Shown in pieces: positions 5,227 through 60,814 of a stretch of 64,000 bases of DNA. Source of the stretch: Octopus sinensis (Eukaryota); contig NC_043010.1 of NCBI RefSeq assembly GCF_006345805.1, positions 59,768,001-59,832,000 on the forward strand, read 5' to 3'. Each line of letters starts with the position of its first letter. Within the stretch, counting starts at the first letter, position 1. The notes beneath the pieces are model-generated. The model saw nothing but the letters and a program-made list of their open reading frames with translations. It had not been told where the DNA came from and ran no database searches. A program made the translations under genes and the position numbers.

Positions 5227-7584
5227 ATGTTGCGACTTCTGTGTGTTTTACTGACTTTCTTCCATTGTTCCTTAAGTGAAGATATCACATACCATGTTGA
5301 AGAAGAGAATATTCCTCATACCTATGTAGGGGACATTGCTACTGACTTACAGAAAGCAGACAGCTCCTTCTTAAAGAATAAGGATTTAATTACATTTAGT
5401 CAACTCCAACAAAAGGGAGAACAGTTGTTCAATGTGACGAGAACAGGTAAACTGTACACTGTTGAGACATTGGATGCTGAGTCTGTGTGTAGTTATGAGA
5501 AAGAATGTTTTGAAATCGTTAAAGTTGCTGTTCACAAATCCAAGACATTTATGAAGATCTTAAAGATTAAGGTCATAATAGAAGACATCAATGACCACCA
5601 ACCTGAGTTTCCAACTGAAGAGGTCAGCATTCAGTTTTCTGAAACTGATGGTAAAGGCACGAAAAGATCAATACCCAATGCTGTTGATAATGATATGGGT
5701 CATAAGAACAGCTTGGTAACATATGAATTAAAAAAGGATAATGGACATTTCTCTTTATTAGTTGCCAAACAAGCTGATGGCATATCATCATTAGAAATTA
5801 TTTTAGAAGAGAAATTAGACAGAGAAACAAAAGACAGTTACAATATTGAAGTCATTGCTAAAGATGGGGGAACTCCACCAAAACAATCTATTTTAAAAGT
5901 GAAAATATCTGTAAAAGACGAAAATGATAACAGACCACAGTTTTCTCAAAGTATCTACAATGTTTCTATAGAACATAAACATAAAAAGAACATTCCAGTA
6001 GTCACATTATCTGCCAGTGATTTAGATATTGGCAGGAATGGTAAAATATCTTATTATTTCAGTAGAAAGACTGCAGAAAAAATGAAGAGATACTTTCATT
6101 TAGATAAAAGTACTGGAAAAATTTTCTTAGTACAATCTTTAGAGGTTGACACAAAAAATTCTTTAAAATTATACATTGAAGCCAGAGATGGAGGTATTCC
6201 TCCTCTCAGTACCATAGCAACTGTTAAGGTAAATGTCATCAACCAGCAGAACAATCCTCCAAATATTGATGTGAACTTTATTTCCACACAGAATCACAAC
6301 ACAGCTACCATTCTGGAAGACATCAAAGTTGGTAGTTTCATTGCTTATGTGATGGTCACTGACAATGATGTTGGACACAATGGAGAGGTGAACTGTCATA
6401 TCAAAGACGACACATTCAAACTACAGTCAATGGGATCGAAGGAATATAAAATAGTTCTAAAGAAAGCAGTAGACAGAGAGACACAGGAACATTATCACTT
6501 TACTGTGTCGTGTGAAGATAAAGGATTACCTGCTCTGAAAACTGATAAAGATCTGTCAATCCAAGTGTTGGATGTGAATGATGTAGAACCACACTTTACG
6601 AAAGACACATTCAAGTTCCTTACCTATGAGAATGACAAAGCTAATTTCCCTATTGGCTTTATCAATGCTACAGACCCAGATATTGGTAAGGGAGGTGAAT
6701 TGTCTTATTCTCTGAGAAATAAACAGCAATATCGTCTGCCATTCCAGATTATCAACTCTGGCTTTATTTCAACAAACCAGTCTTTAGACAGAGAACACAG
6801 AGATTTCTATGAGTTTGAGGTTTTTGTGAAAGACAATGGAAGCCCATCTCTGAATAACACAGTGAATGTTGAAGTGGAAGTATTGGATAGAAATGATAAT
6901 GCTCCATATTTTACATTTCCTAGTGTTGACCCTTTCACTCTTAATGTCCACTATCATCCGCAAAGTAAGAACGACATCACAGTTCTGAAAGCATCTGATA
7001 TAGACAGTCACATGAATGCTTTTCTCAGGTATGAAATCGTTTCAGGTAACGAGAGACAGTTATTTAAACTGGACTCTTTCACTGGTGTGTTATCTTACTC
7101 ACGCACAGTTTACCAAAATGATGCCGGATCATATGAGCTTGAGTTTGTTGTGAAAGACAGTGGTACTCCAGTTCTGTCGGCAACAACTAGTGTGTCTTTG
7201 ACACTGACTGTTAGTAACAAGACGTCACCAATGTTCACAGCTGTGCACCTACCAAGTGATAACACAATAGATGCGACATTGTTGATTATCATTGTAGTAG
7301 CAGCTGTGATAGTATCTATAGCTATTGTGGTTTCTATAACCCTGTGTATTGTGAGATGTAACAATGTGAGAAATAGCTCATCCGAAAGAACAGCAGAAGA
7401 GAAACAGGCATACCAATGTCGCAATGAGATGAGACAGTTGATCTATCAAGGTAACAACAGTGTACCTGTGATGTCAGGTAATCGAGGAGAGATGTCAGAG
7501 AGATATGGTCATTCGAGGAGCCATTACTATCCTGAAGACTGGAAGACATCCACAATGAGTCGGACACTTCAGAAGTCTATCAGG
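5227..7584 (+). CDS. PCDH: Protocadherin U1 large exon: signal peptide, EC1-EC6, TM, proximal tail
   Basis: Acceptor tttcag at 5170; ATG 5227 MLRLLCVLLTFFHCSLS; EC1 Cys-X5-Cys (CSYEKEC); DRE, DxD and DxNDN motifs; TM LLIIIVVAAVIVSIAIVVSITLCIV; phase-0 donor AGG/GTAAGC. Joining to 8949-9099 and 9186-9301 gives ~874 aa in frame. Confidence 0.95.
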
Positions 7585-8366
7585 GTAAGCTTTTTCACTG
7601 TTTTGTTACTATATTGTTGCTTTTCAAACACATCACCTTTGTCTTAATTAATTTTGGAAATAATAAAGAATTTACTAAAATAACTGTTGAATTAGGCTGG
7701 TGTTCGGGATATGAATGGACATGAAATTTTGTTGGAGAAGCTTTAATCTATATTGCTTTAACCCTTTCATTACTGTATTTATTTTGGGATGCTCTGTCTT
7801 TCTTTCGATTACTTTAAACATAACAAAAAATTTAGTAAAATAACTTTATTATCATTCAGCTAGTGTTAGGAACATAAATTGTGACTAAGGTTTGTTGGAA
7901 GATTTTAATTGAAAACTTATGAAAACAAGACATTTGTACTCAGAGCCAGAACTGGTTTCAGTCGGGTTGGTATCAAAAGTGTTAAAGCAGTAATTTTATT
8001 TCATGCAGCTATGTGTGGTGTCAGGTGGGATGGTATCGAAGGGGTTAATTTTATAATCTGTCAGTAAATAGTATTCTATGTCTTTTTCTATTTCCTCCTC
8101 TTATTTCAGTTTGTCATCATCATCATTACCTTTTCTTTGATTCTGCTTTAGTGTTGATTGGTAATTTTGCTTGAAATTTTTCTTTCATCAGAAATGGTAA
8201 AGCATGGGATTAATTATTTGACAGTATTTATATCTAGTTGTATACTGAATCAAAATGCTGCTGGAGTTTGCCTTTTATACCAGTTATGTATGGAGTGCAG
8301 TTCCATCGATTGTATTCTTTCCATAAAAAGGACCTTGTGCCTGCATAAGAAATTATTTTACAGTTC

Positions 8367-8513
8367 ATTATTTACATTATTTACATTCGACAGATATTTG
8401 TCCTCATCTTGTTTGCTGTTAACACAACGTTTCGGCTGATATACCCTCCAGCCTTCATCAGGTGTCTTGGGGAAATTTCGAACCTGGGTTCTCATTCCTT
8501 AGGTATTTTTCAA

Positions 8514-8556
<43 letters not shown>

Positions 8557-8790
8557 GTTCAGGTCACTGCTTGGAATCGAACTTGGAATCTTGAGGTTAG
8601 TAGCTCGCGCTCTTAACCTCAAGATTCTAACATCTAAAAATACCTAAGGAATGAGAACCCAGGTTCGAAATTTCCCCAAGGCATCTGAAGAAGGCTGGAG
8701 GGTATATCAGCCGAAACATTGTGTTAACAACAAACAAGATGAGGACAAATATCCATCAAATGTAAATAATGTACATAATTCTTCATCTCT
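8367..8790. mobile_element. Composite element: inverted Penelope-like terminal fragments around a (TAA)n tract and a tRNA-like core
   Basis: 8367-8515 is the reverse complement of ~8630-8780. Both arms carry CTGA(T/A)GAAGGCTG...CAGCCGAAAC. Core 8556-8618 reads ggttaagagcgcg...gttcgattcc on the minus strand. Confidence 0.6.
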
Positions 8791-8948
8791 TAAATAGAGA
8801 ACTGTATTATTTTACAGTTATTTTGCCAAACTGATTGATATTGGTAAAAAAGTAGGCAGTTGTTTTATACCAAAGATGGATGCATACAACTCCAGAGAAA
8901 GTATCAATTATATTATCTATATCTTGTTACTATTGTATTTTACAGCAG

Positions 8949-9099
8949 AAATATAGCCAACCGATTGAGGTGACATCTTATGGAGACAACAGACCATCCT
9001 CTAACTATCCCACTGACACACTGACCAGTCGTAAGAGCAGTGGACAGTGCTGGAGTGAGCGGTCAAGTAGACAGTATGAAGAAATACCAGCAATGTCAG
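8949..9099 (+). CDS. PCDH: U1 exon 3 (cytoplasmic tail; alternative start 8946)
   Basis: tacagCAG tandem acceptor; KYSQPIEVTSYGDNRPSSNYPTDTLTSRKSSGQCWSERSSRQYEEIPAMS; phase-1 GTAAGG donor. Confidence 0.9.
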
Positions 9100-9185: not shown

Positions 9186-9301
9186 CTATCTATGGTATGC
9201 AACAGGACCCCACAGCCAACACTGAGAAACTGCCCCAGGACAGATATGTGAAACCTCCAGAAAGACAACTCCCTGCTACACCTGATGTTATAAACAACTG
9301 A
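9186..9301 (+). CDS. PCDH: U1 terminal exon 4
   Basis: tttcag acceptor; (A)IYGMQQDPTANTEKLPQDRYVKPPERQLPATPDVINN*. Confidence 0.85.
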
Positions 9302-13315: not shown

Positions 13316-15685
13316 ATGGCAGATATGTTTGTAGCAATTTGCATACTTCTCTCTTGTATGCATTGTAGTCTGTGTAAAGACATTACCTTTCATGTAAAGG
13401 AGGAGAATGTTCCTTACTATTTCATAGGTGACATTGCTACTGAAACTCTTGTCACCAAAACTCTTTTAACTGACGATGCCAGTCTCTTCACATTTAATCA
13501 ACTTAAACAGAAAGGAACTCAACTGTTTAATGTAACAAAAGAAGGAAAATTGTACACAGCTCAAACTTTGGATGCCGAAGTTTTGTGTCGATATAACACT
13601 GAATGTTACAGAACTGTGAAAGTTGCTATCCATAAACATAAAACATTTATGAAGATCTTAAAGATTAAAGTCATAATAGAAGACACCAATGACCACCAAC
13701 CTGAGTTTCCTCAGAAAGAAATCACTCTACATTTTAGGGAAGCAGATGGTAAAGGTATGAAGAAGGCTATACCTAATGCTGTTGATAAAGATGTTGGATA
13801 TCAGAACAGGCTGATTAATTATAAATTGAGAAATAATTCTGTGAAATTTGTGCTGTCTGTTTCTAAAAGAGTGGATGGAATATCCAGATTGGAAATTGTT
13901 TTGAATGAAAAATTAGACAGAGAGCAAAAAGATATCTATCATGTTCAGGTATCAGCTACAGATGGGGGATCCCCACCTAAAGAATGTGTCTTAAAGATAA
14001 CAATAATAGTAGAAGATGAGAATGATAATTTACCTCTTTTCTCAAATGACCTCTACAATATTTCTATTCAGAATACTTATCAAATATACAAACCGATATT
14101 AACTCCTTCTGCAAATGATAAGGATAGTGGTAAAAATGGGATGATTTCTTATTATTTTAGTCCAATGACTTCTGATATTGACAAAACATACTTTGGCCTG
14201 AATAAAACAACTGGAGATATATTTCTAATTGATGAAATTGATATTGATGAAGAGAGGATTATGTATACACTTTATATAGAAGCCAGGGATGGAGGTAATC
14301 CACCCCTGAGTTCCATAGCAGCTGTCCATGTAAATGTTATCAACGAACACAACAAACCCCCAAATATTGATGTGAACTTTATTTCTACACAGAATCACAA
14401 CACAGCTACCATTCTGGAAGACATCAAAGTTGGTAGTTTCATTGCTTATGTGATGGTCACGGACAATGATGTTGGACACAATGGAGAGGTGAACTGTCAT
14501 ATCAAAGACGACACATTCAAACTACAGTCAATGGGATCGAAGGAATATAAAATAGTTCTAAAGAAAGCAGTAGACAGAGAGACACAGGAACATTATCACT
14601 TTACTGTGTCGTGTGAAGATAAAGGATTACCTGCTCTGAAAACTGATAAAGATCTGTCAATCCAAGTGTTGGATGTGAATGATGTAGAACCACACTTTAC
14701 GAAAGACACATTCAAGTTCCTTACCTATGAGAATGACAAAGCTAATTTCCCTATTGGCTTTATCAATGCTACAGACCCAGATATTGGTAAGGGAGGTGAA
14801 TTGTCTTATTCTCTGAGAAATAAACAGCAATATCGTCTGCCATTCCAGATTATCAACTCTGGCTTTATTTCAACAAACCAGTCTTTAGACAGAGAACACA
14901 GAGATTTCTATGAGTTTGAGGTTTTTGTGAAAGACAATGGAAGCCCATCTCTGAATAACACAGTGAATGTTGAAGTGGAAGTATTGGATAGAAATGATAA
15001 TGCTCCATATTTTACATTTCCTAGTGTTGACCATTTCACTCTTAATGTCCACTATCATCCGCAAAGTAAGAACGACATCACAGTTCTGAAAGCATCTGAT
15101 ATAGACAGTCACATGAATGCTTTTCTCAGGTATGAAATCGTTTCAGGTAACGAGAGACAGTTATTTAAACTGGATTCGTTCACTGGTGTGTTATCTTACT
15201 CTCGCACAGTTTACCAAAATGATGCCGGATCATATGAGCTTGAGTTTGTTGTGAAAGACAGTGGTACTCCAGTTCTGTCAGCAACAACTAGTGTGTCTTT
15301 GGCACTGACTGTTAGTAACAAGACGTCACCAATGTTCACAGCTGTGCACCTACCAAGTGATAACACCATAGATGCGACATTGTTGATTATCATTGTAGTA
15401 GCAGCTGTGATAGTATCTATAGCTATTGTGGTTTCTATAACCCTGTGTATTGTGAGATGTAACAATGTGAGAAATAGCTCATCTGAAAGAACAGCAGAAG
15501 AGAAACAGGCATACCAATGTCGCAATGAGATGAGACAGTTGATCTATCAAGGTAACAACAGTGTACCTGTGATGTCAGGCAATCGAGGAGAGATGTCAGA
15601 CAGATACGGTCATTCGAGGAGCCATTATTATCCTGAAGACTGGAAGACATCAACAATGAGTCGGACACTTCAGAAGTCTACAAAG
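13316..15685 (+). CDS. PCDH: Protocadherin U2 large exon
   Basis: ORF MADMFVAICILLSCMHCSLC..., six EC repeats plus TM; phase-0 donor AAG/GTAAAT. Joining to 18864-19014 and 19386-19504 gives ~879 aa in frame. Confidence 0.95.
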
Positions 15686-23317: not shown

Positions 23318-25675
23318 ATGCTAACTTATTTATCTATCATCTTGGCTTTCTTCCACTGTTGCTACAATGAACTTATCTATGTAGTGGAGGAAGAAAATAC
23401 TGCTAACTCTTATATTGGAGATATTGCTGAAGATTCTGGTCTCTGGGACAGTTTAAAACACCATGAAAGACACTTACTCACATTCATCCAGCTACAGCAG
23501 AATGGAAGACATCTATTTAATATCACTAAACCAGGGAAAATGTTCACTGTTCATCCATTGGATGCTGAGACTCTCTGTATTCTTGAAAAACAGTGCATTC
23601 ATACAATCAACGTTGCAGCTCACAAAGGAAAAGAGTTTATAAAAATTCTAAAGATCAAAATCATTATTGAAGACATCAATGACCACTGGCCTACATTCCC
23701 TGTCGATCATATCATCTTACAGTTTTCTGAAATGGATGGCCAAGGCAGGAGAAGATCAATCCCAGACGCCACAGACAAGGATGTTGGCAGTCAAAATCGA
23801 TTAATTATGTACAAATTAAAGAAAAAACGAAATTATCCTTTTACTCTACAAGATTTTAAAAGAGCAGATGGAACTTCTCACCTAGATATCGTCTTGGAAG
23901 GTAAACTGGACAGAGAAATTAAAGCTGTTTACAATTTTGAAGTTATTGCTGAAGATGGTGGGAATCCTCCAAAACAAACAATTCTAAATGTTGAAATAAA
24001 TATCTCAGATGTTAATGATAATTCACCAGTTTTTTCTCAGAGAATTTACAGAATTAATATCAATGACACACATCCAAAACATAAGGCAATTGTTACATTA
24101 TCTGCTTACGACTTTGATATTGGTAACAATGGTGAAATATCTTACTATTTTAGTCCTATAACATCTGAAACATTGACTAAATATTTTACATTAAATAGAA
24201 AAAATGGAGAAATTTTATTGTCTACAAATTTAAATTTAGGTAAATTGGATACATCGAAAATATTCATAGAAGCCAGAGATAGGGGCAACCCTCCTCTCAG
24301 TTCCATAGCAACTGTTATGGTAAGTGTCATCAACCAACACAACAATCCTCCAAATATTGATGTGAACTTTATTTTTACACGGAATCACAACACAGCTACC
24401 ATTCTGGAAGACTTCAAAGTTGGTAGTTTCATTGCTTATGTGATGGTCACTGACAACGATGTTGGACACAATGGACAGGTGAACTGTCATATCAAAGACG
24501 ACACATTCAAACTACAGTCAATGGGATCGAAGGAATATAAAATAGTTCTAAAGAAAGCAGTAGACAGAGAGACACAGGAACATTATCACTTCACTGTGTC
24601 GTGTGAAGATAAAGGATTACCTGCTCTGAAAACTGATAAAGATCTGTCAATCCAAGTGTTGGATGTGAATGATGTAGAGCCACACTTTACGAAAGACACA
24701 TTCAAGTTCCTTACCTATGAGAATGACAAAGCTAATTTCTCTATTGGCTTTATCAATGCTACAGACCCAGATATTGGTAAGGGAGGTGAATTGTCTTATT
24801 CTCTGAGAAATAAACAGCAATATCGTCTGCCATTCCAGATTATCAACTCTGGCTTTATTTCAACAAACCAGTCTTTAGACAGAGAACACAGAGATTTCTA
24901 TGAGTTTGAGGTTTTTGTGAAAGACAATGGAAGCCCATCTCTGAATAACACAGTGAATGTTGAAGTGGAAGTATTGGATAGAAATGATAATGCTCCATAT
25001 TTTACATTTCCTAGTGTTGACCCTTTCACTCTTAATGTCCACTATCATCCGCAAAGTAAGAACGACATCACAGTTCTGAAAGCATCTGATATAGACAGTC
25101 ACATGAATGCTTTTCTCAGGTATGAAATCGTTTCAGGTAACGAGAGACAGTTATTTAAACTGGACTCGTTCATTGGTGTGTTATCTTACTCTCGCACAGT
25201 TTACCAAAATGATGCCGGATCATATGAGCTTGAGTTTGTTGTGAAAGACAGTGGTACTCCAGTTCTGTCAGCAACAACTAGTGTGTCTTTGACACTGACT
25301 GTTAGTAACAAGACGTCACCAATGTTCACAGCTGTGCACCTACCAAGCGATAACACAATAGATGCGACATTGTTGATTATCATTGTAGTAGCAGCTGTGA
25401 TAGTATCTATAGCTATTGTGGTTTCTATAACCCTGTGTATTGTGAGATGTAACAATGTGAGAAATAGCTCATCTGAAAGAACAGCAGAAGAGAAACAGGC
25501 ATACCAATGTCGCAATGAGATGAGACAGTTGATCTATCAAGGTAACAACAGTGTACCTGTGATGTCAGGTAATCGAGGAGAGATGTCAGACAGATTTGGT
25601 CATTCGAGGAGCCATTACTATCCCGAAGACTGGAAGACATCGACAATGAACAGAAGCTTACCAATAAACTTTAAG
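23318..25675 (+). CDS. PCDH: Protocadherin U3 large exon
   Basis: Acceptor ttttcag at 23262; ATG 23318 MLTYLSIILAFFHCCYN; six EC plus TM; phase-0 donor AAG/GTAAGT. Joining to 29488-29623 and 29716-29840 gives ~872 aa in frame. Confidence 0.95.
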
Positions 25676-29487: not shown

Positions 29488-29623
29488 CAAAACTATAGTC
29501 AGCCAGTAGCAGTGACATCATTTGAATACCCCCCTGGCATGTCGAGCAATCATAAAGATAGTGAACAGTGCTGGAGTGAAGGGTCAAGTACACACTATGA
29601 AGAAATACCAGCAGTATCATCAG
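29488..29623 (+). CDS. PCDH: U3 exon 3 (divergent)
   Basis: ttcacag acceptor; QNYSQPVAVTSFEYPPGMSSNHKDSEQCWSEGSSTHYEEIPAVSS; phase-1 GTAGAG donor. Confidence 0.85.
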
Positions 29624-33387: not shown

Positions 33388-35766
33388 ATGCTTTCACTGA
33401 CAAAAGAAAATATGTTGAGCTTTTCAGTTTTGCTAACTTTCTTCTTCCCCTGCTGTCTCAGTTTTAATTTAATCTACAAGGTAAAGGAAGAGACAAACAC
33501 ACATACATTTGTTGGAGACATTACAGCTGATCCACAGTTTCAAGACGTAGTGCCATCTGGAGATATTGGTCATATTACGTTTAATCAACTGAAACTTAAA
33601 GGAACACAGATATTTAATGTTTCTGAAAGTGGGAAAATCTACACAATACAAACACTGGATGCTGAAGCCCTCTGTACTTTTGAAAAGGAATGTTTCCAGG
33701 AAGTTAAAGTTGCTGTTCACAAAGGAAAAAACTTCTTGAAAATCTTGAAAATTAAAGTAGTTATAGAAGACATCAATGACCACCAACCTGAGTTTCCAGA
33801 GAAAGAAATTACTATACGTTTCAGAGAAGGTGATGGTAAAGGAATGAAAAAGTCCATTCCAAATGCCATTGACAAAGATGTTGGAGTTTTAAATAGTGTA
33901 ATTAATTATCATTTAAAGGACAACAAGGAAATGTTTTCATTGTTAGTTTCTAAAAGAGCTGATGGAATATCTCGACTAGAGATTGTTCTAGAAAGTAAAT
34001 TAAATAGAGAAGTGAAAGATCACTATAGTCTGGAAGTCATTGCTAAGGATGGAGGAAGTCCATCCAAAGAAAGTATTTTAAAGGTAAACATAGAAGTTCA
34101 AGATGAAAATGATAATTTACCTGTATTTCAACAAAAACTATACAACATTTCTGTAAAGAAAACACAAGACAAAAACAAAGCTGTTGTTATTGTATCAGCT
34201 GAAGATCTGGATATCGGTAAAAATGGAGAGATTTCTTATTATTTTAGTCCAAAGACACTCGAGAAAAACAAACAATATTTCAAGTTAGATAAAATCACAG
34301 GAGAAATATTGTTCTCAAAAAATACAAACTTTAATGAAGAAACATTTAAATTATATATTGAAGCCAGAGATGGGGGCAACCCACCTCTCAGTTCCATAGC
34401 AACTGTTATGGTAAATGTCATCAACCAGCAGAACAATCCCCCAAATATTGATGTGAACTTTATTTCTACACAGAATCACAACACAGCTACCATTCTGGAA
34501 GACATCAAAGTTGGTAGTTTCATTGCTTATGTGATGGTCACTGACAACGATGTTGGACACAATGGAGAGGTGAACTGTCATATCAAAGATGACACATTCA
34601 AACTACAGTCAATGGGATCGAAGGAATATAAAATAGTTCTAAAGAAAGCAGTAGACAGAGAGACACGGGAACATTATCACTTTACTGTGTCGTGTGAAGA
34701 TAAAGGATTACCTGCTCTGAAAACGGATAAAGATCTGTCAATCCAAGTGTTGGATGTGAATGATGTAGAGCCACACTTTACGAAAGACACATTCAAGTTC
34801 CTTACCTATGAGAATGACAAAGCTAATTTCCCTATTGGCTTTATCAATGCTACAGACCCAGATATTGGTAAGGGAGGTGAATTGTCTTATTCTCTGAGAA
34901 ATAAACAGCAATATCGTCTGCCATTCCAGATTATCAACTCTGGCTTTATTTCAACAAACCAGTCTTTAGACAGAGAACACAGAGATTTCTATGAGTTTGA
35001 GGTTTTTGTGAAAGACAATGGAAGCCCATCTCTGAATAACACAGTGAATGTTGAAGTGGAAGTATTGGATAGAAATGATAATGCTCCATATTTTACATTT
35101 CCTAGTGTTGACCCTTTCACTCTTAATGTCCACTATCATCCGCAAAGTAAGAACGACATCACAGTTCTGAAAGCATCTGATATAGACAGTCACATGAATG
35201 CTTTTCTCAGGTATGAAATCGTTTCAGGTAACGAGAGACAGTTATTTAAACTGGATTCATTCACTGGTGTGTTATCTTACTCTCGCACAGTTTACCAAAA
35301 TGATGCCGGATCATATGAGCTTGAGTTTGTTGTGAAAGACAGTGGTACTCCAGTTCTGTCAGCAACAACTAGTGTGTCTTTGACACTGACTGTTAGTAAC
35401 AAGACGTCACCAATGTTCACAGCTGTGCACCTACCAAGTGATAACACAATAGATGCGACATTGTTGATTATCATTGTAGTAGCAGCTGTGATAGTATCTA
35501 TAGCTATTGTGGTTTCTATAACCCTGTGTATTGTGAGATGTAACAATGTGAGAAATAGCTCATCTGAAAGAACAGCAGAAGAGAAACAGGCATACCAATG
35601 TCGCAATGAGATGAGACAGTTGATCTATCAAGGTAACAACAGTGTACCTGTGATGTCAGGTAATCGAGGAGAGATGTCAGACAGATACGGTCATTCGAGG
35701 AGCCATTACTATCCTGAAGACTGGAAGACATCGACAATGAGCAGAACACTCCAGAAGTCTACAAAG
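33388..35766 (+). CDS. PCDH: Protocadherin U4 large exon (start may be ATG 33412)
   Basis: Acceptor tttcag at 33364; signal peptide MLSFSVLLTFFFPCCLS; six EC plus TM; phase-0 donor AAG/GTAAGT. Joins 36548-36698 and 38021-38142 in frame. Confidence 0.95.
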
Positions 35767-44328: not shown

Positions 44329-46999
44329 ATGTTAAAGATGTGGAGAATTCTGTGTCTGATGTCTTTACTAATCCAGTGCTATCACTGTCTGAACCTCACT
44401 TACCGGGTGAAAGAAGAAAACAGTCCCATTACATATATAGGTTCTATTGCATCCAGTAAACAATTTTTGAAGACCTTTTCATCAGAAGAACTGAAAGTAA
44501 TTACATTTAATCAACTCCAACAAAAGGAGGCAGAATTATTTAATGTCACAACAACAGGGAAACTCTACACTCTTCAAACAATAGATGCTGAATCACTGTG
44601 TAGATATAATAAGGAGTGTTCGAGAATTATTAAAGTAGCTGTTCACAAACAGAAAACTTTTGTAAGAATTTTAAAAGTCAAAATAATCATAGAAGACATC
44701 AATGACCACCAACCTGAGTTTCCAGACAAGGAAATAACTTTACATTTTGAAGAAGGAGATGGCAAAGGAATGAAAAAGTCCATTGCAAATGCCATTGACA
44801 AAGATGTTGGTTTTAAAAACAGATTAATTCATTACAAATTATCGCAATCTAATCACTCGTTTTCTCTGGAAGTATTCGAACATGCTGATGGTGTATCATA
44901 CCTTCAGATTGTTCTAGAAGAAAAGTTAGACAGAGAGGTAAAAGAATTATACAATGTAGAAGTTATTGCAGAAGATGGAGGAACTCCAGCCAAGCAGAGT
45001 GTGTTAAATGTTAAGATTGTAGTTGACGATGAAAATGATAATCGACCTGTTTTTTCAAAGAGAATATATAATGTGTCAGTAGCAAAAACACATAAAACCA
45101 ACATACCGGTCGTCATAGTGTCAGCACAGGATTCTGACAGTGGGGACAATAGGAAAATATCGTATCATTTTAGTCCAATGGAGTTGAACCGCGTAGACGC
45201 AGGGCCAGGGGGTAAGATGAAGACGAGTTTAGAAGTACAGTGTTGAAGAAGAGAAGAAGAGCAGAGATGGAGGAACTCAGCAAGCAGAGTGTGTTAAATG
45301 TTAAGATTGTAGTTGACGATGAAAATGATAATCGACCTGTTTTTTCAAAGAGAATATATAATGTGTCAGTAGCAAAAACACATAAAACCAACATACCGGT
45401 CGTCATAGTGTCAGCACAGGATTCTGACAGTGGGGACAATAGGAAAATATCGTATCATTTTAGTCCAATGACATCAGAAATGGATAGTAGACATTTCCAG
45501 TTGAAACCAGACACTGGGGAGATATTTCTAACAGAAACCTCAAGTCTACAAGAAAAAGTTATTTATGAGTTATTTATAGAGGCTAGAGATGGAGGGAAAC
45601 CTCCTCTCAGCTCCATAGCAACTGTTATGGTAAATGTCATCAACCAACACAACAATCCTCCAAATATTGATGTGAATTTTATTTCTGCACAGAATCACAA
45701 CACAGCTACCATTCTGGAAGACATCAAAGTTGGTAGTTTCATTGCTTATGTGATGGTCACTGACAATGATGTTGGACACAATGGCCAGGTGAACTGTCAT
45801 ATCAAAGACGACACATTCAAACTACAGTCAATGGGATCGAAGGAATATAAAAATAGTTCTAAAGAAAGCAGTAGTAGACAGAGAGACACAGGAACATATC
45901 ACTTTACTGTGTCGTGTGAAGATAAAGGTTACCTGCTCTGAAAACTGATAAAGATCTGTCAATCCAAGTGTTGGATGTGATGATGTAGAACCACACTTTA
46001 CGAAAGACACATTCAAGTTCCTTACCTATGAGAATGACAAAGCTAATTTCCCTATTGGCTTTATCAATGCCCACAGACCCAGATATTGGTAAGGGAGGTG
46101 AATTGTCTTATCTCTCTGAGAAATAAACAGCAATATCGTCTGCCATTCCAGATTATCAACTCTGGCTTTATTTCAACGAACGAACCAGTCTTTAGACAGA
46201 GAACACACAGAGATTTCTATGAGTTTGAGGTTTTGTGAAAGACAATGGAAGCCCATCTCTGAATAACACAGTGAATGTTGAAGTGGAAGTATTGGATAGA
46301 AATGATAATGCTCCATATTTTACATTTCCTAGTGTTGACCCTTTCACTCTATATGTCCACTATCATCCGCAAAGTAAGAACGACATCACAGTTCTGAAAG
46401 CATCTGATATAGACAGTCACATGAATGCTTTTCTCAGGTATGATGAATCGTTCAGGTAACGAGAGACAGTTATTCAAACTGGACTCGTTCAACTGTGTGT
46501 TATCTTACTCTCGTACAGTTACCAAAATGATGCTGGATCATATGAGCTTGAGTTTGTTGTGAAAGACAGTGGTACTCCAGTTCTGTCAGCAAAACAACTA
46601 GTGTGTCTTTGACACTGACTGTTAGTAACAAGACGTCACCAATGTTCACAGCTGTGCACCTACCAAGTGATAACACAATAGATGCGACATTGTTGATTAT
46701 CATTGTAGTAGCAGCTGTGATAGTATCTATAGCTATTGTGGTTTCTATAACCCGTGTGTATTGTGAGATGTAAAAATGAGTAGAAATAGCTCATCTGAAA
46801 GAACAGCAGAAGAGAAACAGGCATACCAATGTCGCAAGTGAGATGAGACAGTTGATCTATCAAGGTAACAACAGTGGTACTGTGATGTCAGGTTAATCGA
46901 GGAGAGATGTCAGACAGATATGGTCATTCAAGGAGCCATTACTATCCTGAAGACTGGAAGACGTCGACAATGAACAGAACACTCCAGAAGTCAACAAGG
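44329..46999 (+). pseudogene. PCDH: Protocadherin U5 large exon, apparently disrupted; pseudogene or (more likely) uncorrected assembly errors
   Basis: Intact signal peptide and EC1-EC2 from ATG 44329; ~210-bp duplication (44968-45180 and 45261-45470) with an 80-nt spacer; many 1-4 nt indels from ~45850 to ~46995; donor GTAAGT at 47000. Confidence 0.6.
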
Positions 47000-47830
47000 G
47001 TAAGTATTATTTTAGGTAAATATGTTGCAAACTTATTTTTATGTTTGAGTAATTTAGATTGTGGAATTATTGCTGTATGTTAAGTAAATCTGATACACTA
47101 AGACATGCATTAGAAGTGAATAGCAGACCGCGATAGATGGTCTCACTTTGCAAAACATCAAAAACAATGCTTTGTATCTTTACATTTCTGTTTCACATGC
47201 TATTTTCAAATATCTGTGGAGCCTGCTTTGAGGTTTTTTATCCCGTCATGGCTTTTAAAGTATACACCAAATAGTTCCAGGTGTCAGTGTAATTACATAG
47301 ACACTGCTCATTATGTAGTGGCCCTGCTACTCTTTGAGATCCCTGCAGAATTGAACACGATAAAATGGCTAGCATGATTTTAATAATCTTTTTGGAACAT
47401 CCAGAGAGATGCATTTTCAACATTATTACAATATTCTTTCCAAATGTTTACATTGTAAACATTTGAAGAGTTCTCATAAATATGAAGTTTGGAATTACAT
47501 CAAGGTTTACATAAAATATCTTTAACTCATATTCTGGGTTAATCATGTATTAGTCGTTAATGCAACTACCATATTCTATTATTAATCATTTGAGGTAATA
47601 TTTTCAAAATTAAACATATCACCATATATTTCTCCAGAACGAAACTACGATAATTTATTCAATATCAGATAAATACAGTATAATGAGTGATCATAACAAT
47701 GATTATTATGATTGTCATATGCTGCTGCTTTCTATAAATTCAGTGAAAGTAGGATGAGTTATTCATTAGCATTGTCAATCGTGAATGATATGTTTACATT
47801 AACCCTTGTTACTATTATACTTTACAGCAG

Positions 47831-47981
47831 AAATACAGTCAACCGATTGAGGTGACATCTTATGGAGACAACAGACCATCTTCTAACTATCCCACTGACA
47901 CATTGACCAGTCGTAAGAGCAGTGGACAGTGCTGGAGTGAGCGGTCAAGCAGACAGTATGAAGAAATACCAGCAATGTCAG
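47831..47981 (+). CDS. PCDH: U5 exon 3 (alternative start 47828)
   Basis: tacagCAG acceptor; intact tail peptide; GTAGGA donor. Confidence 0.85.
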
Positions 47982-48151
47982 GTAGGACAACAATTGATTC
48001 TCATTTAATATTACAGTAATTCATTACTAATTATTGTACTAATTATTGTTGTATACTCTGAGATGTAATTAGTTCTGTCTGTGTGTCCCTAGAGTATATC
48101 TGATGATGGTGATTGTTTCAGACATTGCTACATTAAAACAATGTTTTGCAG

Positions 48152-48270
48152 GGATCTATGGTAGCCAACAGGATACACCAGTGAACCCCGAAAGACAACA
48201 GTATCAAGACAGATATGTGAAACCTCCAGAGAGACAGTTACCTTCAACACCAGATGTCATTACTAACTGA
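48152..48270 (+). CDS. PCDH: U5 terminal exon 4
   Basis: ttttgcag acceptor; (G)IYGSQQDTPVNPERQQYQDRYVKPPERQLPSTPDVITN*. Confidence 0.85.
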
Positions 48271-48856
48271 CCACTGGTCATTTAACTAAATATTGACCCT
48301 TTACAATAATATTTCAAATAACCACCAACCCCCTTCACTCACACAAACTAATATAAATATAATAACTTCTCTCATTACCTCACAATTATAATATTATATT
48401 CCAACCTATGATAGAATATATGGACACTAACAGTGAAGTCAGCAACATTTCAAACCACCACACACACACACACACACACTTAATGTTTTAATATCGCTCC
48501 TCTTTTCTCTAATATTCTCAGTTAGGTGATTTTTATATTTCCCAAATATCTCTGGAATTAAATTAGAATACGTTTAAAATATATTTCTTTATTTTTACAA
48601 CAGTGTTATTAAAATCTAAGTCTTAGGAAATTATATTTAAAAATGGTACAAAAAAACCTGCTTGAAATTAGAATATCCTTCTCTATTTGTTCCTGCATCC
48701 TCCATTATAGGTTGGGTGTATATTTAGGTCAGACACATCTTAACCAGAACTGTTCTATATTAACATCATTTGTTAGTAATATATTTACCAATATCAGTGA
48801 TGTTTGTTAATATGAGATCCGTATGAAACACTGAATATATATATATATATCTATGC

Positions 48857-48888
<32 letters not shown>

Positions 48889-48890
<2 letters not shown>

Positions 48891-49035
48891 ATCAGACATG
48901 TTGGTGTTATATGGACTTCTTATGGCTGACTGTTAGTGGAGCTGATATTGTTTGTTCTCTTTCTTTCTTTCCCTCTTCTCTTTGAGGGAAACACAGCATC
49001 TTGTGTGTGTGAGGCTGGAGCAAGCATCACCCATC
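48889..49035 (+). promoter_or_regulatory. Conserved upstream blocks A+B of U6, preceded by (TA)n(CT)n
   Basis: Homologous to the other units. Confidence 0.65.
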
Positions 49036-49093
49036 CCTCCTCTCTCTCTCTCTCTTACACGCATATGCACACACACACACACTAAACATCACA

Positions 49094-49272
49094 ATCCACA
49101 AAGGAAGACTGAGAGGGACTGCTGGTTCCCACTGACTCACCACACAACACTATTCCATCAACATGAAGCCATTGTCACACCATAGCAGCAGTGACACACA
49201 GACAACCATTAACAACAGAACATTGGGACCAAGTCACAGTTTATACAACAAAGGATTTTACATACAATGAAG
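49094..49272 (+). other. Leader exon 1 of U6 (with a few small indels)
   Basis: Conserved block; donor GTAAGT at 49273. Confidence 0.7.
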
Positions 49273-50723
49273 GTAAGTCTATGAATGTTATTTGGTATTA
49301 TTAAGATATTTGACTGATGATTGTTAGAGAAACTTTCTTCAGCCATCTTTTACTATAGAATATAATAAATAGAAATTATGTCAGTAGACATTTAAATATG
49401 GTCTTTGCCAGTTACACGGTTTCTGTTGAGATTTATATGTTCATGATTCATATTTTGCTGTTAGGAAGTGTGAAATAATATTTAATTATGGTTATTTTCC
49501 AAGTGAAAATATTTAAATCCAGTCAGTGTTGTGTCTTATTTGCAGACATCTTCCTATTATTATCAGTATTGATAATGTATAATATATAACCAGAAGATGT
49601 TCTTTATTGTGTGTATTAAAAAAAAGAATCTGAGTGTTTCTTGTGAAGGATGTTTTGAGAGAGTCAAGTATCATTATTGTGTTTATATGTAAGAATGGGT
49701 TATATTAATATAAAATATTAAAGTGAAACTGGGAGAAGAGTTGACAAGATGGTGGTTTAGTGTCAACATAAATAATCAATATTGTGTTGTGGTATTATTT
49801 AAGTCTTTCTAAATTTAATATTGTATCAGATTTTATTGGTTTTCATGTATTTGCTGCCTTTAAGGTGAACTAGTATCATATTGGTTGTTTATAAATAATA
49901 TCTTATTTTTTTTAATATTTATTCATAGTACTATACTTCTGCTGAAATATCAATTCGTGTTTCTGCAGTAAATTAACTTATTTCAATGTACAGAAATTTC
50001 CTAGAATAATTTAACAGTCAACATTATCAAGAGAAGATAATGTTATTTAATTTTGGTGTAAGAAATTATCTTTAAAGTATTTTATATAAGTATACTATTG
50101 GAACAGTACTAAGTGACGTTAGAGGTAAGTGTGGTATGGCTGAATTCAGTCATTTTAAAGCATTTGATGTGAAACTACATCGAAAAGACATGGCATATCT
50201 GGACCATCACACCACCCCATCATCACTTAATGTCTCTCTTCAATAGTTAAATTTTGACAATTGCCAAGGCAACATCTATAGTTGTTACTTATTGTGCTCC
50301 AGCATGGACACAACCATTAACACAATGAAACTGTTGCAGTAATGACAGTGTAATGAAATCATATCAGTGATATGAATCCAGATGTGATTCTGCTTCATAG
50401 ATTCAGCCAGCTGTGCACCTCCTCCTCCCAAATCAAGCCATAATATTAACTAATATTCTTATTTGTTTCTCTACTAAACTCTGACTCATCCTGCCGTTCT
50501 CCTGCATCAGGCCAACTCATCTTGATGCTCTGCTAAGTTATGGGTGCAACCATTTCCCCTCCACCGATATACTATTCCACACTACAGAACATTCTAAGTT
50601 TCTTTTAATGTTTTACATATTATATTTCTATGTTTTACCAACGATAATTTATTGTTTCTTCACATATGAAAGACACTTTTCTCTCATAATTTCAGGTTAA
50701 TTGACTGGTATTTAACTCAACAA

Positions 50724-53073
50724 ATGAAGATGGTCTTAATAGCGATATGGATATTACAGTCTCTGCTCCACTGTTCTGTTTCTAAAGACATTGTTTACCA
50801 TGTGAAAGAAGAGAACAGTCCTGTTATCAACATAGGAGACATTACTGCTGATTCCCAGTTAAAGGACACTGCATTATTATCGTTCAGTCAGTTGCAACAG
50901 AAGGGAACACAGCTGTTTAATGTGACCACCACTGGGAAGATATACACCACACAAACACTGGATGCTGAGTCTCTGTGTACTTTTGAGAAAGAATGCTTTC
51001 ACACAATTAAGGTAGCCGTTCATAAAGCAGGTAAATTTATAAAGATATTGAAAATTAAGGTGATTATAGAAGACATCAATGACCATCAACCAGAGTTTCC
51101 TGTGGAAGATATAATTCTGCAATATTCTGAAACTGAAAGTAAAGGCACAAAACGGTCAATTCCCAATGCCATTGACAAAGATGTTGGATTGACAGAACAG
51201 ATTAGTGAATTATGAATTGAAGGGAAGTAACCAACAGTTTTCTTTGTCCACATTCAAAAGAGCAGACGGAGTATCTTTTCTTGAAATTATATTACAAGGA
51301 AAGTTGGATAGGGAGACGAAAGACAGCTATAATATAGAAGTGATTGCTAAGGATGGAGGAACTCCACCCAAACAGGGTGTCTTAAATGTGCACATAACTG
51401 TGAAAGATGAAAATGATAACAGACCAATTTTCTCTGAGAAAACATACAATGTCTCTATACAAAATAACCATGAAAAGAATAGACCAGTTGTTGTAATGAT
51501 GGCAGAAGACTCTGATATTGGAGAAAATGGTAAAGTTTCATATTATATCAGCCCAACAACGTCAACAGATTCAAAAGATAATTTTATTATAAATGAGAAA
51601 ACTGGAGAAATATTCTTAGCCAAAGAATCACAATTTGACAAAATGAAATCATTTAAATTATACATTGAAGCCAGAGATGGGGGCAACCCTCCTCTCAGTT
51701 CCATAGCCACGGTTATGGTAAATGTTATCAACCAGCAGAACAATCACCCAAATATTGATGTGAACTTTATTTCTACACAGAATCACAACACAGCCACCAT
51801 TCTGGAAGACATCAAAGTTGGTAGTTTCATTGCTTATGTGATGGTCACTGACAATGATGTTGGACACAATGGACAGGTGAACTGTCATATCAAAGACAAC
51901 ACATTCAAACTACAGTCAATGGGATCGAAGGAATATAAAATAGTTCTAAAGAAAGCAGTAGACAGAGAGACACAGGAACATTATCACTTTACTGTGTCGT
52001 GTGAAGATAAAGGATTACCTGCTCTGAAAACTGATAAAGATCTGTCAATTCAAGTGTTAGATGTGAATGATGTAGAACCACACTTTACGAAAGACACATT
52101 CAAGTTCCTTACCTATGAGAATGACAAAGCTAATTTCCCTATTGGCTTTATCAATGCTACAGACCCAGATATTGGTAAGGGAGGTGAATTGTCTTATTCT
52201 CTGAGAAATAAACAGCAATATCGTCTGCCATTCCAGATTATCAACTCTGGCTTTATTTCAACAAACCAGTCTTTAGACAGAGAACACAGAGATTTCTATG
52301 AGTTTGAGGTTTTTGTGAAAGACAATGGAAGCCCATCTCTGAATAACACAGTGAATGTTGAAGTGGAAGTATTGGATAGAAATGATAATGCTCCATATTT
52401 TACATTTCCTAGTGTTGACCATTTCACTCTTAATGTCCACTATCATCCGCAAAGTAAGAACGACATCACAGTTCTGAAAGCATCTGATATAGACAGTCAC
52501 ATGAATGCTTTTCTCAGGTACGAAATCGTTTCAGGTAACGAGAGACAGTTATTTAAACTGGACTCTTTCACTGGTGTGTTATCTTACTCTCGCACAGTTT
52601 ACCAAAATGATGCCGGATCATATGAGCTTGAGTTTGTTGTGAAAGACAGTGGTACTCCAGTTCTGTCAGCAACAACTAGTGTGTCTTTGACACTGACTGT
52701 TAGTAACAAGACGTCACCAATGTTCACAGCTGTGCACCTACCAAGTGATAACACAATAGATGCGACATTGTTGATTATCATTGTAGTAGCAGCTGTGATA
52801 GTATCTATAGCTATTGTGGTTTCTATAACCCTGTGTATTGTGAGATGTAACAATGTGAGAAATAGCTCATCTGAAAGAACAGCAGAAGAGAAACAGGCAT
52901 ACCAATGTCGCAATGAGATGAGACAGTTGATCTATCAAGGTAACAACAGTGTACCTGTGATGTCAGGTAATCGAGGAGAGATGACAGACAGATATGGTCA
53001 TTCGAGGAGCCATTACTATCCAGATGACTGGAAGATGTCTACAATGAACAGAACACTTCAGAAATCTACACGG
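50724..53073 (+). CDS. PCDH: Protocadherin U6 large exon with one apparent +1 frameshift at ~51191
   Basis: Acceptor tttcag at 50695; MKMVLIAIWILQSLLHCSVS; ORFs 50724-51215 and 51205-53154 join if the extra G in ggattGacagaac (U7: ggattacagaac) is removed; phase-0 donor CGG/GTAAGT. Confidence 0.85.
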
Positions 53074-56216: not shown

Positions 56217-56218
<2 letters not shown>

Positions 56219-58465: not shown

Positions 58466-60814
58466 ATGAAGATGGTCTTAATAGCGATATGGATATTACA
58501 GTCTCTGCTTCACTGTTCTGTCTCTAAAGACATTGTTTACCATGTGAAAGAAGAGAACAGTCCTGTTATCAACATAGGAGACATTACTGCTGATTCCCAG
58601 TTAAAGGACACTGCATTATTATCGTTCAGTCAGTTGCAACAGAAGGGAACACAGCTGTTTAATGTGACCACCACTGGGAAGATATACACCACACAAACAC
58701 TGGATGCTGAGTCTCTGTGTACTTTTGAGAAAGAATGCTTTCACACAATTAAGGTAGCCGTTCATAAAGCAGGTAAATTTATAAAGATATTGAAAATTAA
58801 GGTGATTATAGAAGACATCAATGACCATCAACCAGAGTTTCCTGTGGAAGAAATTCAATTAACATTTGGAGAAGGAGAAAGAAACGGTATGAAAAAGTCC
58901 ATCCCCAATGCCATTGACAAAGATGTTGGATTACAGAACAGATTAGTGAATTATGAATTGAAGGGAAATAACCAACAGTTTTCTTTGTCCACATTCAAAA
59001 GAGCAGACGGAGTATCATTTCTTGAAATTATATTAGAAGGAAAGTTAGACAGAGAGACGAAAGACAGCTATAATATAGAAGTGATTGCTAAGGATGGAGG
59101 AACTCCACCCAAACAGGGTGTCTTAAATGTGCACATAACTGTGAAAGATGAAAATGATAACAGACCAATTTTCTCTGAGAAAACATACAATGTCTCTATA
59201 CAAAATAACCATCAAAGAAATATACCAGTTGTTGTAATGATGGCAAAAGATTCTGACATTGGAGAAAATGGTAAAGTTTCATATTATATCAGCCCAACAA
59301 CATCAACAGAATCAAAAGATAATTTTATTATAAATGAGAAAACTGGAGAAATATTCTTAAACAAAGAATCACAATTTGACAAAATGAAATCATTTAAATT
59401 ATACATTGAAGCCAGAGATGGTGGTAACTCCCCTCTCAGTTCCATAGCAACGGTTATGGTAAATGTCATAAATGAACACAACAATCCCCCAAATATTGAT
59501 GTGAACTTTATTTCTACACAGAATCACAACACAGCTACCATTCTGGAAGACATCAAAGTTGGTAGTTTCATTGCTTATGTGATGGTCACTGACAATGATG
59601 TTGGACACAATGGACAGGTGAACTGTCATATCAAAGATGACACATTCAAACTACAGTCAATGGGATCAAAGGAATATAAAATAGTTCTAAAGAAAGCAGT
59701 GGACAGAGAGACACAGGAACATTATCACTTTACTGTGTCGTGTGAAGATAAAGGATTACCTGCTCTGAAAACTGATAAAGATCTGTCAATCCAAGTGTTG
59801 GATGTGAATGATGTAGAACCACACTTTACGAAAGACACATTCAAGTTCCTTACCTATGAGAATGACAAAGCTAATTTCCCTATTGGCTTTATCAATGCTA
59901 CAGACCCAGATATTGGTAAGGGAGGTGAATTGTCTTATTCTCTGAGAAATAAACAGCAATATCGTCTGCCATTCCAGATTATCAACTCTGGCTTTATTTC
60001 AACAAACCAGTCTTTAGACAGAGAACACAGAGATTTCTATGAGTTTGAGGTTTTTGTGAAAGACAATGGAAGCCCATCTCTGAATAACACAGTGAATGTT
60101 GAAGTGGAAGTATTGGATAGAAATGATAATGCTCCATATTTTACATTTCCTAGTGTTGACCCTTTCACTCTTAATGTCCACTATCATCCGCAAAGTAAGA
60201 ACGACATCACAGTTCTGAAAGCATCTGATATAGACAGTCACATGAATGCTTTTCTCAGGTACGAAATCGTTTCAGGTAACGAGAGACAGTTATTCAAACT
60301 CGACTCATTCACCGGTGTGTTGTCTTACTCTCGCACAGTTTACCAAAATGATGCCGGATCATATGAGCTTGAGTTTGTTGTGAAAGACAGTGGCACTCCA
60401 GTTCTGTCAGCAACAACTAGTGTGTCTTTGACACTGACTGTTAGTAACAAGACGTCACCAATGTTCACAGCTGTGCACCTACCAAGTGATAACACAATAG
60501 ATGCGACATTGTTGATTATCATTGTAGTAGCAGCTGTGATAGTATCTATAGCTATTGTGGTTTCTATAACCCTGTGTATTGTGAGATGTAACAATGTGAG
60601 AAATAGCTCATCTGAAAGAACAGCAGAAGAGAAACAGGCATACCAATGTCGCAATGAGATGAGACAGTTGATCTATCAAGGTAACAACAGTGTACCTGTG
60701 ATGTCCGGTAATCGAGGAGAGATGACAGACAGATATGGTCATTCGAGGAGCCATTACTATCCAGATGACTGGAAGATGTCTACAATGAACAGAACACTTC
60801 AGAAATCTACACGG
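58466..60814 (+). CDS. PCDH: Protocadherin U7 large exon
   Basis: Acceptor ttttcag at 58437; ATG 58466; six EC plus TM; phase-0 donor CGG/GTAAGT. Joining to 62830-62980 and 63151-63269 gives ~872 aa in frame. Confidence 0.95.

Follow-up and report, generated by a model that had tools for sequence, protein, structure and literature searches.

The protocadherin array examined here raises the question of how tandem genes can carry strongly diverged membrane-distal domains on membrane-proximal parts that are almost identical, silent sites included. The window, that is, the whole stretch of DNA analyzed, comprises 64,000 nucleotides of Octopus sinensis (assembly GCA_006345805.1, chromosome CM016872.1, approximately positions 59,768,001-59,832,000), is free of any N, and contains seven protocadherin genes (units U1 to U7), all on the + strand and spaced 6-11 kb apart. 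In vertebrates, clustered protocadherins part recognition, which resides in extracellular cadherin (EC) repeats EC1-EC4, from assembly and signaling, by means of constant-exon splicing combined with conversion of the membrane-proximal region. For the octopus array, we consider it highly probable that the best overall explanation is a combination of anciently diverged tips with a stalk homogenized by exchange, within a tandem series of complete genes.

A sharp split within the big exon

The assignment of these genes to the protocadherins follows from a Pfam Cadherin_2 match together with five Cadherin stretches (E 7e-72) and five interdomain linker motifs, which together give six ECs; a hydrophobic transmembrane (TM) segment follows, and everything lies inside one exon of 2.35 kb, hereafter the big exon. 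The top database matches of the window proteins are octopus 'protocadherin beta-15-like' proteins, and U2 is 97% identical to one of the proteins compared (P0042). Pfam places EC1 of U1 at residues 20-100 and EC3 at residues 244-337, so that the motif PNIDVNF (residues 345-351) marks the EC3/EC4 linker. The initial annotation of this DNA, which described a variable/constant array, had placed seven such anchors, and all seven were recovered on the + strand by a degenerate pattern with 0 expected matches (6259, 14360, 24350, 34441, 45660, 51748, and 59489); likewise, the bounds it gave, 5227 and 60814, are precisely the ATG of U1 and the final base of the U7 big exon. One qualification concerns the seven units themselves: the reading frames of about 800 amino acids (aa) are intact in five units (U1, U2, U3, U4, and U7) and broken in the other two in this assembly. 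The big exons are as follows.

5227..6258, + strand: U1 big exon, variable half (signal peptide, EC1-EC3); synonymous divergence (dS) to other units 1.5-2.3; Pfam matches to EC1 and EC3
6259..7584, + strand: U1 big exon, homogenized half (EC4-EC6, TM, juxtamembrane region), ending at an AGG/GTAAG donor
13316..15685, + strand: U2 big exon (variable 13316-14359, homogenized 14360-15685)
23318..25675, + strand: U3 big exon (variable 23318-24349, homogenized 24350 to about 25590; final ~30 codons diverged)
33412..35766, + strand: U4 big exon (variable 33412-34440, homogenized 34441-35766)
44329..46999, + strand: U5 big exon, disrupted in this assembly (homogenized part 45660-46999)
50724..53073, + strand: U6 big exon (variable 50724-51747, homogenized 51748-53073)
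58466..60814, + strand: U7 big exon (variable 58466-59488, homogenized 59489-60814); corresponds to the NCBI model P0029

In 100-nt windows, the initial ~1 kb of the big exon shows a mean pairwise identity of 57-73% between units, and the stretch directly before PNIDVNF reaches 86%; over the ~1.25 kb that begins with the motif, identity is 93-99.7%, mostly above 97%, and it then declines to 64% where the exon ends and to background level further on. For the five intact units, the Nei-Gojobori method gives a dS of 1.5 to saturated and a nonsynonymous divergence (dN) of 0.27-0.43 in the variable half, as opposed to a dS of 0.046-0.089 and a dN of 0.003-0.019 in the constant half (PNIDVNF to the donor), where a run of 120 codons is entirely free of differences. 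At silent sites, the constant half is 20-40 times less diverged than EC1-EC3. Thus, the near-identity noticed downstream of PNIDVNF does extend to the silent sites, and a constant-half dS as high as that of EC1-EC3, the finding that would have spoken against homogenization, is clearly not observed; only the count of about 14 differences between the constant halves of U1 and U2, made by eye, rises to 18 (13 synonymous and five nonsynonymous). The strong divergence ascribed to the first ~1.0 kb in all seven units holds between gene types and fails for U6 versus U7, which are recent whole-unit duplicates.

The edge of the homogenized part is marked by codon usage. Across the eight intact O. sinensis units, the 30 codons upstream of PNIDVNF encode conserved amino acids and yet occur in two to five codon variants each, whereas from the first PNIDVNF codon on nearly every column holds a single codon; codon diversity climbs again across the last ~30 codons of the big exon. 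The codons before the motif are a built-in control, in that constraint at the protein level leaves silent variation there and the stalk has almost none. Moreover, introns cannot be aligned between gene types. GC content at third codon positions (GC3) exceeds that of the variable half in the constant half of each unit compared, with 0.36-0.38 versus 0.25-0.33 in O. sinensis and Octopus vulgaris units and 0.32-0.33 versus 0.24-0.30 in those of Argonauta.

The tips had been termed hypervariable, a label that the substitution pattern does not bear out. The dN/dS ratio in EC1-EC3 is 0.15-0.28 (0.15-0.19 between orthologs, 0.2-0.26 among paralogs of the U1 type, and 0.28 for U6 versus U7), and a sliding dN/dS search for positive selection in EC1-EC3 found none, with no window above 1 and the highest 30-codon window at or below 0.53. 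The tips are old paralogs that escaped homogenization. Furthermore, a comparison of eight units of the U1 type, drawn from O. sinensis and O. vulgaris, gives a proportion of differing synonymous sites (pS) of 0-0.19 for EC1, where one 30-codon window is unchanged, and of 0.2-0.6 for EC2-EC3; the initial ~55 codons of EC4 have a pS of about 0.05-0.11. The U1-type subfamily has, therefore, a second, nested tier of homogenization in EC1 (window positions 5227-5620 in U1), and EC2-EC3 is its diverse core.

Tips group by gene type and stalks by species

The array extends beyond the window. An adjoining O. sinensis sequence (L001, CM016872.1 59,743,556-59,767,982) stops 18 bases before the window and carries three further units of the same array, which brings the length to at least ten units; an eleventh promoter element, at window positions 63876-63902, is the last copy of a putative promoter element described below and shows where a predicted eighth window unit starts, at the window's end. 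The comparison also included loci of O. vulgaris (L003), Argonauta hians (L004, L006, and L007), and O. bimaculoides (L002), as well as a locus of O. sinensis itself that was fetched via the protein P0029 and covers window positions 55472-64000 with 100% identity across 8529 bases (L005). The identity of 98.5-99.3% to L001 and L003 was at first taken as conservation across species and then dropped as such, since L001 belongs to the same genome as the window and L003 to a sister species; the informative comparison is with Argonauta. In addition, L003 does not correspond to the window by orthology, hence the ortholog dS values given below are those of O. sinensis versus Argonauta.

Argonauta has the gene types in the same order as the window: a U1-like unit, a U3-type unit (ortholog P0032), a U5-type unit, and two units of the U6/U7 type. 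Between orthologs of O. sinensis and Argonauta, dS is 0.85-1.2 in the variable half and 0.21-0.27 in the constant half; between paralogs of different types within either species it is 1.5 or more in the variable half and 0.03-0.11 in the constant half. At the protein level, variable halves are 71-77% identical to the Argonauta ortholog versus 53-63% to the paralogs in the window, and in constant halves the relationship is reversed, with 89-94% to the ortholog and 98-99.5% to the paralogs. The divergence among constant halves amounts to 0.9-3.8% in O. sinensis, 0.45-1.6% among five O. vulgaris units, and 0.9-1.7% in Argonauta, compared with 5.6-7.5% between Octopus and Argonauta, and 45 nucleotide differences in this half are fixed between 15 Octopus and three Argonauta copies. 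The fragments available from O. bimaculoides give a weak comparison only, with five fixed differences in 634 columns.

Separate trees for EC1-EC3 and for the part from EC4 on, suggested at the outset as a check, were built by neighbor-joining with 200 bootstraps, and the two halves conflict completely. The variable-half tree has cross-species clades by type at 100% and an Argonauta species clade at 0%; the constant-half tree has the species clade at 100% and the type clades at 0%. The conflicting trees, the dS values, and the fixed differences together imply that the gene types predate the split between the two lineages and that the stalks were homogenized separately in each. The edge of the homogenized tract lies at the same codon in Argonauta as in O. 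sinensis, and the same partition into variable and constant halves recurs in the independent O. vulgaris assembly. Thus, the evidence supports concerted evolution as the process that maintains the similarity of the constant halves. The proposal that concerted evolution rather than splicing produces the constant part is upheld by the 20- to 40-fold lower silent divergence, by the conflict between the trees, and by the presence in every unit of its own terminal exon and stop codon.

Gene structure beyond the big exon

Each unit is a four-exon gene that consists of a putative non-coding leader, the big exon, a cytoplasmic exon of 154 nt (exon A), and a short terminal coding exon (exon C). Accordingly, the view that the whole design is built inside a single exon is too narrow, given that the separate leader exon and the separate cytoplasmic exon are homogenized as well. 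The elements outside the big exons are the following.

2262..2288, + strand: U1 promoter-proximal element with TATA-like core CATCAGACATGTTGGTGTTATATAGAC, ~215 nt upstream of block B
10193-10219, 38513-38539, 48890-48916, 56218-56244, 63876-63902, + strand: other copies of this element (six matches in total, 0 expected)
2479..2687, + strand: U1 leader-exon block B, ending in a GGTAAGT donor
10354-10561, 20183-20390, 30502-30677, 38726-38929, 49073-49282, 56405-56613, + strand: other copies of block B, from self-comparison
8946..9099, + strand: U1 exon A, 154 nt, QKYSQPIEV...EEIPAMS, with sharp AG...GT borders
18861-19014, 36545-36698, 47828-47981, 55153-55306, 62827-62980, + strand: other copies of exon A; peptide 98-100% identical in six units
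29488..29623, + strand: diverged exon A of U3, 136 nt, 51% aa identity to the other copies
9186..9301, + strand: U1 exon C, last coding exon with stop, unit-specific
19386-19504 (U2), 29716-29840 (U3), 38021-38142 (U4), + strand: exon C, each with its own stop codon
48152-48270 (U5), 55477-55595 (U6), 63151-63269 (U7), + strand: exon C, each with its own stop codon
1603-1724, + strand: exon C of the upstream unit U0, identical to that of U4

Block B spans ~200 nt, is 92-99% identical among copies, and lies 1.6-5.5 kb upstream of each big exon; a polypyrimidine/CAG acceptor stands just upstream of every big-exon ATG. Judging from these signals, we infer that block B is a non-coding 5' leader exon. 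Its interpretation as a coding or 3' exon was rejected because it has stops in every frame, indels that are not multiples of three and break the frame, and a conserved donor. Block B also holds a short ATG...TAG reading frame, ATGAAGCCATTGTCACACCATAG (e.g., in 56405-56613), which is identical in all seven window copies and could be a regulatory upstream open reading frame. The putative promoter element is conserved over ~65 nt, with a (CT)n/(CA)n microsatellite after it; the element is recognizable at six of eight leader-exon positions and degenerate upstream of U3 and U4.

Exon A lies between intron sequences that, on both sides, are unrelated between units. The diverged version in U3 has a counterpart in its Argonauta ortholog P0032, in which exon A is likewise diverged. 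In U2, the acceptor of exon A (18849-18863) reads CAT in place of CAG, and the CAG 3 nt downstream probably serves instead, which would drop one Gln; this Gln is also absent from several annotated relatives (P0002, P0006, and P0012).

Exon C follows 90-1300 nt after exon A. Between types it shows 50-64% aa identity, with the motif QDRYVKPPERQLPSTPDV in common; it is identical among U5, U6, and U7, and U0 equals U4 in the same way. Spliced together, the big exon and exons A and C encode 873-880 aa, compared with 876-879 aa in annotated relatives. Constant exons common to all units were considered and rejected, because the C-terminal peptide of the relatives is present in every unit, each time with its own stop.

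These exons define the limits of the constant part. The constant tail proposed initially stands for the stretch from EC4 to the juxtamembrane region and for exon A, and does not extend to the last ~90 nt of the big exon or to exon C, which are unit-specific. Similarly, the flanking introns are for the most part unrelated, as had been claimed, with the exceptions that the ~200-nt leader block and the promoter-proximal element accompany the units, that the 154-nt exon is conserved in all but U3, and that U5, U6, and U7 share ~2 kb of 3' flank. Homogenization spares the variable half, the bulk of the intron sequence, the 3' end of the big exon, and exon C.

Traces of exchange and competing explanations

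Exchange between units has left traces both within the stalk and outside it. Among 29 informative stalk sites in 14 Octopus copies, 185 of the 406 pairs fail the four-gamete test. Family members from outside the window share the stalk in part: P0036 does so from EC5 on, P0035 switches within EC6, and P0028 and P0033 lose the match after the TM segment. The most extended block is the following.

47805..49853, + strand: ~2-kb 3' flank of U5, 96-97.5% identical to 55130-57182 (U6) and 62804-64000 (U7)

This flank contains exon A, the intron, exon C, intergenic DNA, the next promoter and leader, and the start of the next intron, and despite it the variable half of U5 is just ~72% identical to those of U6 and U7. 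The mostly non-coding 3' flank of the three units has thus been homogenized along with the exons. U0 and U4 are 98-99% alike over exon C and the following leader. Moreover, the U4 intron before exon A (35991-36544) has no match in the other window units and is 95% identical to part of an O. vulgaris unit (L003 42915-43460) whose variable half is only 73% like that of U4, which suggests that variable halves may have been re-paired with 3' parts.

Part of this evidence would also suit a variant of concerted evolution in which units are born and die by unequal crossing-over, with breaks inside the stalk, and short-tract conversion is not required. U6 and U7 stem from a recent duplication of an entire unit (~96-98% identity across 7.7 kb), long 3' blocks are common to different variable halves (U5 with U6/U7, and U0 with U4 at 99%), and the match of the second U4 intron to an O. 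vulgaris unit with a different variable half points in the same direction. Nevertheless, the conserved order of gene types in Octopus and Argonauta argues against frequent turnover of units; most introns between homogenized blocks are unrelated, which patchy short tracts fit better; and the differences between U6 and U7 are bunched into a handful of small patches within the variable half, the most notable of them where EC2 begins. We treat crossing-over in place of short-tract conversion as possible and rather doubtful.

The second alternative dispenses with exchange and attributes the identity of the constant halves purely to very strong purifying selection that extends to silent sites, for example through RNA editing, splicing, or regulatory signals. 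This idea draws on the between-species dS of the constant halves, which falls short of the value for the orthologous variable halves by a factor of 4-5, on the reported enrichment of RNA editing in cephalopod protocadherins (bioRxiv 10.1101/714394), and on the identity of the 154-nt exon, which ends exactly at the splice sites. Selection of this kind would, however, keep orthologs at least as similar as paralogs, whereas the constant halves cluster by species, at 100% bootstrap and with 45 differences fixed, and the variable halves by type, so that the trees contradict it as the sole cause; non-coding flanks are co-homogenized, and variants are distributed in mosaic patterns. Furthermore, a comparison of predicted local RNA folding, admittedly a weak test, gives z-scores of -0.5 to -0.9 for the constant half and of -1.1 to +0.35 for the variable half; the constant half does not fold more strongly, and thus RNA structure is not supported as the cause of silent-site conservation. 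As a complete explanation purifying selection is very improbable, and it may act as a contributing force.

Assembly quality has to be considered next, because constant halves that truly differ could have been collapsed or over-polished to a consensus. The O. sinensis assembly, which we take to be PacBio-based, and that of O. vulgaris combine noisy long reads with short-read polishing. For O. vulgaris the data are from Oxford Nanopore Technologies (ONT) reads with Illumina polishing (PMC10700109). The O. bimaculoides assembly, which is based on short reads, is gapped exactly in the constant halves (4931 N in L002), as near-identical repeats would cause, and the indels of U5 are confined to the repeated part. 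Set against this, the same partition and the same boundary occur in three assemblies of three species produced by different methods; the copies are not identical and carry structured shared variants; the Argonauta copies share 45 differences from all Octopus copies; and polishing is unable to turn a dS near 2 into 98-99% identity. The recurrence of the partition, the boundary, and the genus-specific differences cannot be explained by polishing, and an artefact of this kind is scarcely credible.

Finally, the suggestion that the units were duplicated recently and that EC1-EC3 then diverged fast, by positive selection or local hypermutation, has in its favor the recent duplicates U6 and U7, with silent differences about twice as frequent in the variable half (pS 0.09 versus 0.045 in the constant half), and can be practically dismissed. 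Between types, EC1-EC3 is saturated at silent sites; dN/dS stays at 0.15-0.28 and exceeds 1 in no window; introns of different types are unalignable; every type has an Argonauta ortholog at the same relative position; and the variable-half tree contradicts the suggestion.

Proposed mechanism and its limits

Given anciently diverged tips on an exchange-homogenized stalk, we propose that non-reciprocal exchange between neighboring units repeatedly overwrites defined blocks, namely the leader exon, the region from EC4 through the juxtamembrane part, and the 154-nt exon. The exchange would be gene conversion, probably supplemented by unequal crossing-over inside shared sequence, and its outcome would be a near-identical stalk on all types within each species, with the types themselves, defined by EC1-EC3, older than the Octopus/Argonauta split. 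The 5' edge of the main tract coincides with the EC3/EC4 linker in O. sinensis and in Argonauta. Most likely, selection on binding specificity would remove any tract that extends into EC3; homology also stops at this linker, which would restrict further exchange. In the U1-type subfamily, EC1 is homogenized too, and EC2-EC3 is left as the diverse core. Selection thus presumably sets the tract boundary. By analogy with the vertebrate protocadherins, the shared stalk would serve common functions in cis-assembly, at the membrane, or in signaling, the variable tip would confer homophilic specificity, and a role as a neuronal barcode is plausible; such a barcode would entail homophilic trans binding specific to each isoform, promiscuous assembly in cis, and stochastic combinatorial expression in neurons.

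Several observations weigh against this scheme or limit its reach. The constant-half dS between species, four to five times below that of the orthologous variable halves, differs from what neutral concerted evolution predicts; this slow silent divergence implies an extra constraint or bias on the silent sites of the stalk, so that conversion is not the whole story, and RNA editing constraint, biased conversion, or selection for uniformity could be responsible. The 154-nt exon, isolated in its identity amid introns that are unrelated, offers conversion a short substrate, and its identity may be owed in part to selection. The present data do not allow conversion to be told apart from unequal crossing-over. 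Short-read polishing can over-homogenize 1.3-kb repeats, and the exact figures of 1-2% are therefore soft. The unit-specific C-terminal exon slightly weakens the functional interpretation.

A more far-reaching version of the hypothesis, which we offer tentatively and regard as uncertain at best, is that octopods independently arrived at the logic of the vertebrate clustered protocadherins. Under this version, a tip of EC2-EC3 or EC1-EC3 would be protected from exchange while conversion renders EC4-EC6, the TM segment, and the juxtamembrane region uniform; the edge would have been held since before the Octopus/Argonauta split; uniformity of the stalk would itself be selected, for instance for cis co-assembly; and the slow silent sites would reflect a function at the nucleotide level, such as serving as RNA editing substrates.

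Relationship to known systems

In the clustered protocadherins of vertebrates, conversion is known to be domain-restricted and to leave EC2-EC3 untouched (Noonan 2004, cited by PMC4978886), and it has been re-measured in Xenopus, mouse, and zebrafish (PMC4978886). For cephalopod protocadherins, 'recent duplications or gene conversions' have been mentioned (Styfhals 2019, PMC6339937, quoting Albertin 2015), as has 'homogenization through gene conversion' (Albertin 2022, PMC9068888); these genes lack shared constant exons and expanded independently of those of vertebrates (PMC9068888). The published cephalopod expansions belong to the same family and, like the present array, form same-orientation sub-arrays of close multi-exon genes (PMC9068888, PMC6339937). 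In the cephalopod protocadherin literature searched, we found no domain-level analysis, EC3/EC4 boundary, silent-site contrast, or comparison of variable with constant trees; the supplements of Albertin 2015 and of Wang & Ragsdale 2017 may hold an earlier description. Thus, the general idea of conversion is not new, and the octopus pattern is an independent, convergent variant of the domain-restricted conversion of vertebrates.

The resemblance to the vertebrate Pcdh alpha, beta, and gamma clusters includes tandem units on the same strand, each with its own promoter (a putative one in octopus), one large exon for the six EC repeats and the TM segment, and low dS in membrane-proximal ECs as opposed to high dS in EC2-EC3. 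Vertebrate clusters are further characterized by a CTCF-bound conserved sequence element (CSE) in every promoter and by stochastic promoter choice; the octopus units have the conserved ~65-nt element with its TATA-like core. The U1-type subfamily comes closest, with a homogenized EC1 and diverse EC2-EC3, as described for vertebrate clusters in PMC4978886. In contrast to vertebrate units, which are spliced to shared constant exons, those of the octopus are complete genes with 3' exons and a stop codon of their own; the extreme C-terminus is unit-specific rather than constant; homogenization in the octopus also covers a non-coding leader and a small cytoplasmic exon of its own; and the dS ratio between the halves, ~20-40, is much higher than the values of 2.5-5.4 among those tabulated for Xenopus (PMC4978886). 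With classical concerted evolution the array shares the closer similarity of paralogs within a species than of orthologs, mosaic variants, a modestly raised GC3, and tract edges at the end of homology or at selected regions. It is unlike classical cases in that the edge splits one exon at a domain linker and has kept its exact codon position in both octopod lineages.

An invertebrate family with an expansion of its own has therewith reached a similar division into tip and stalk through exchange among whole genes alone. The neuronal barcode idea for cephalopods becomes concretely testable, as the variable domains (EC1-EC3, or EC2-EC3 in the U1 type) and the constant ones can now be named. In practical terms, near-identical stalks of 1.3 kb break short-read assemblies and mislead gene models, and full-length counts and trees of cephalopod protocadherins mix two histories, so that trees based on EC1-EC3 only are to be advised.

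Disrupted units, gene models, and minor features

The U5 lesions comprise an internal duplication of ~290 bp (44968-45180 = 45261-45470) and 17 small indels in the homogenized part, with the variable part open for 918 nt. The unit is either a pseudogene or the product of an assembly or polishing error, and the error is at least as likely as a true pseudogene because the lesions affect only the repeated part and the 918-nt variable frame is intact. U6 carries a frameshifting 1-nt insertion near 51192, which may likewise be either an assembly error or a real lesion. This frameshift adjoins a patch at the start of EC2 (U6 51100-51200 versus U7 58840-58935) in which the U6 peptide SETESKGTKRSI resembles SETDGKGTKRSI of U1 and the U7 peptide is GEGERNGMKKSI; the U1-like patch may reflect conversion over a short distance within the variable half.

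Public gene models of the family are confused. A 3535-aa O. sinensis model fuses several units (L005 1-124, about window 55472-55595), P0029 skips part of the U7 stalk, and P0034 fuses two O. bimaculoides units across gaps. Because the NCBI models deviate in such ways, exact look-up of the spliced window proteins returned no match; published counts and full-length trees of the family are probably affected by such repeat-confused models.

Among the non-coding features, a TA/TG/CA-rich microsatellite of ~1.3 kb (16800-18100) occupies part of the intron after the U2 big exon and produces spurious open reading frames of 150-315 aa made of Y/I/C/M repeats. Introns and intergenic regions also contain inverted-repeat pairs of 86-93% identity (8367-8518 / 8628-8779; 26504-26885 / 53471-53850; 41998-42088 / 42320-42408), which are probably remnants of transposable elements.

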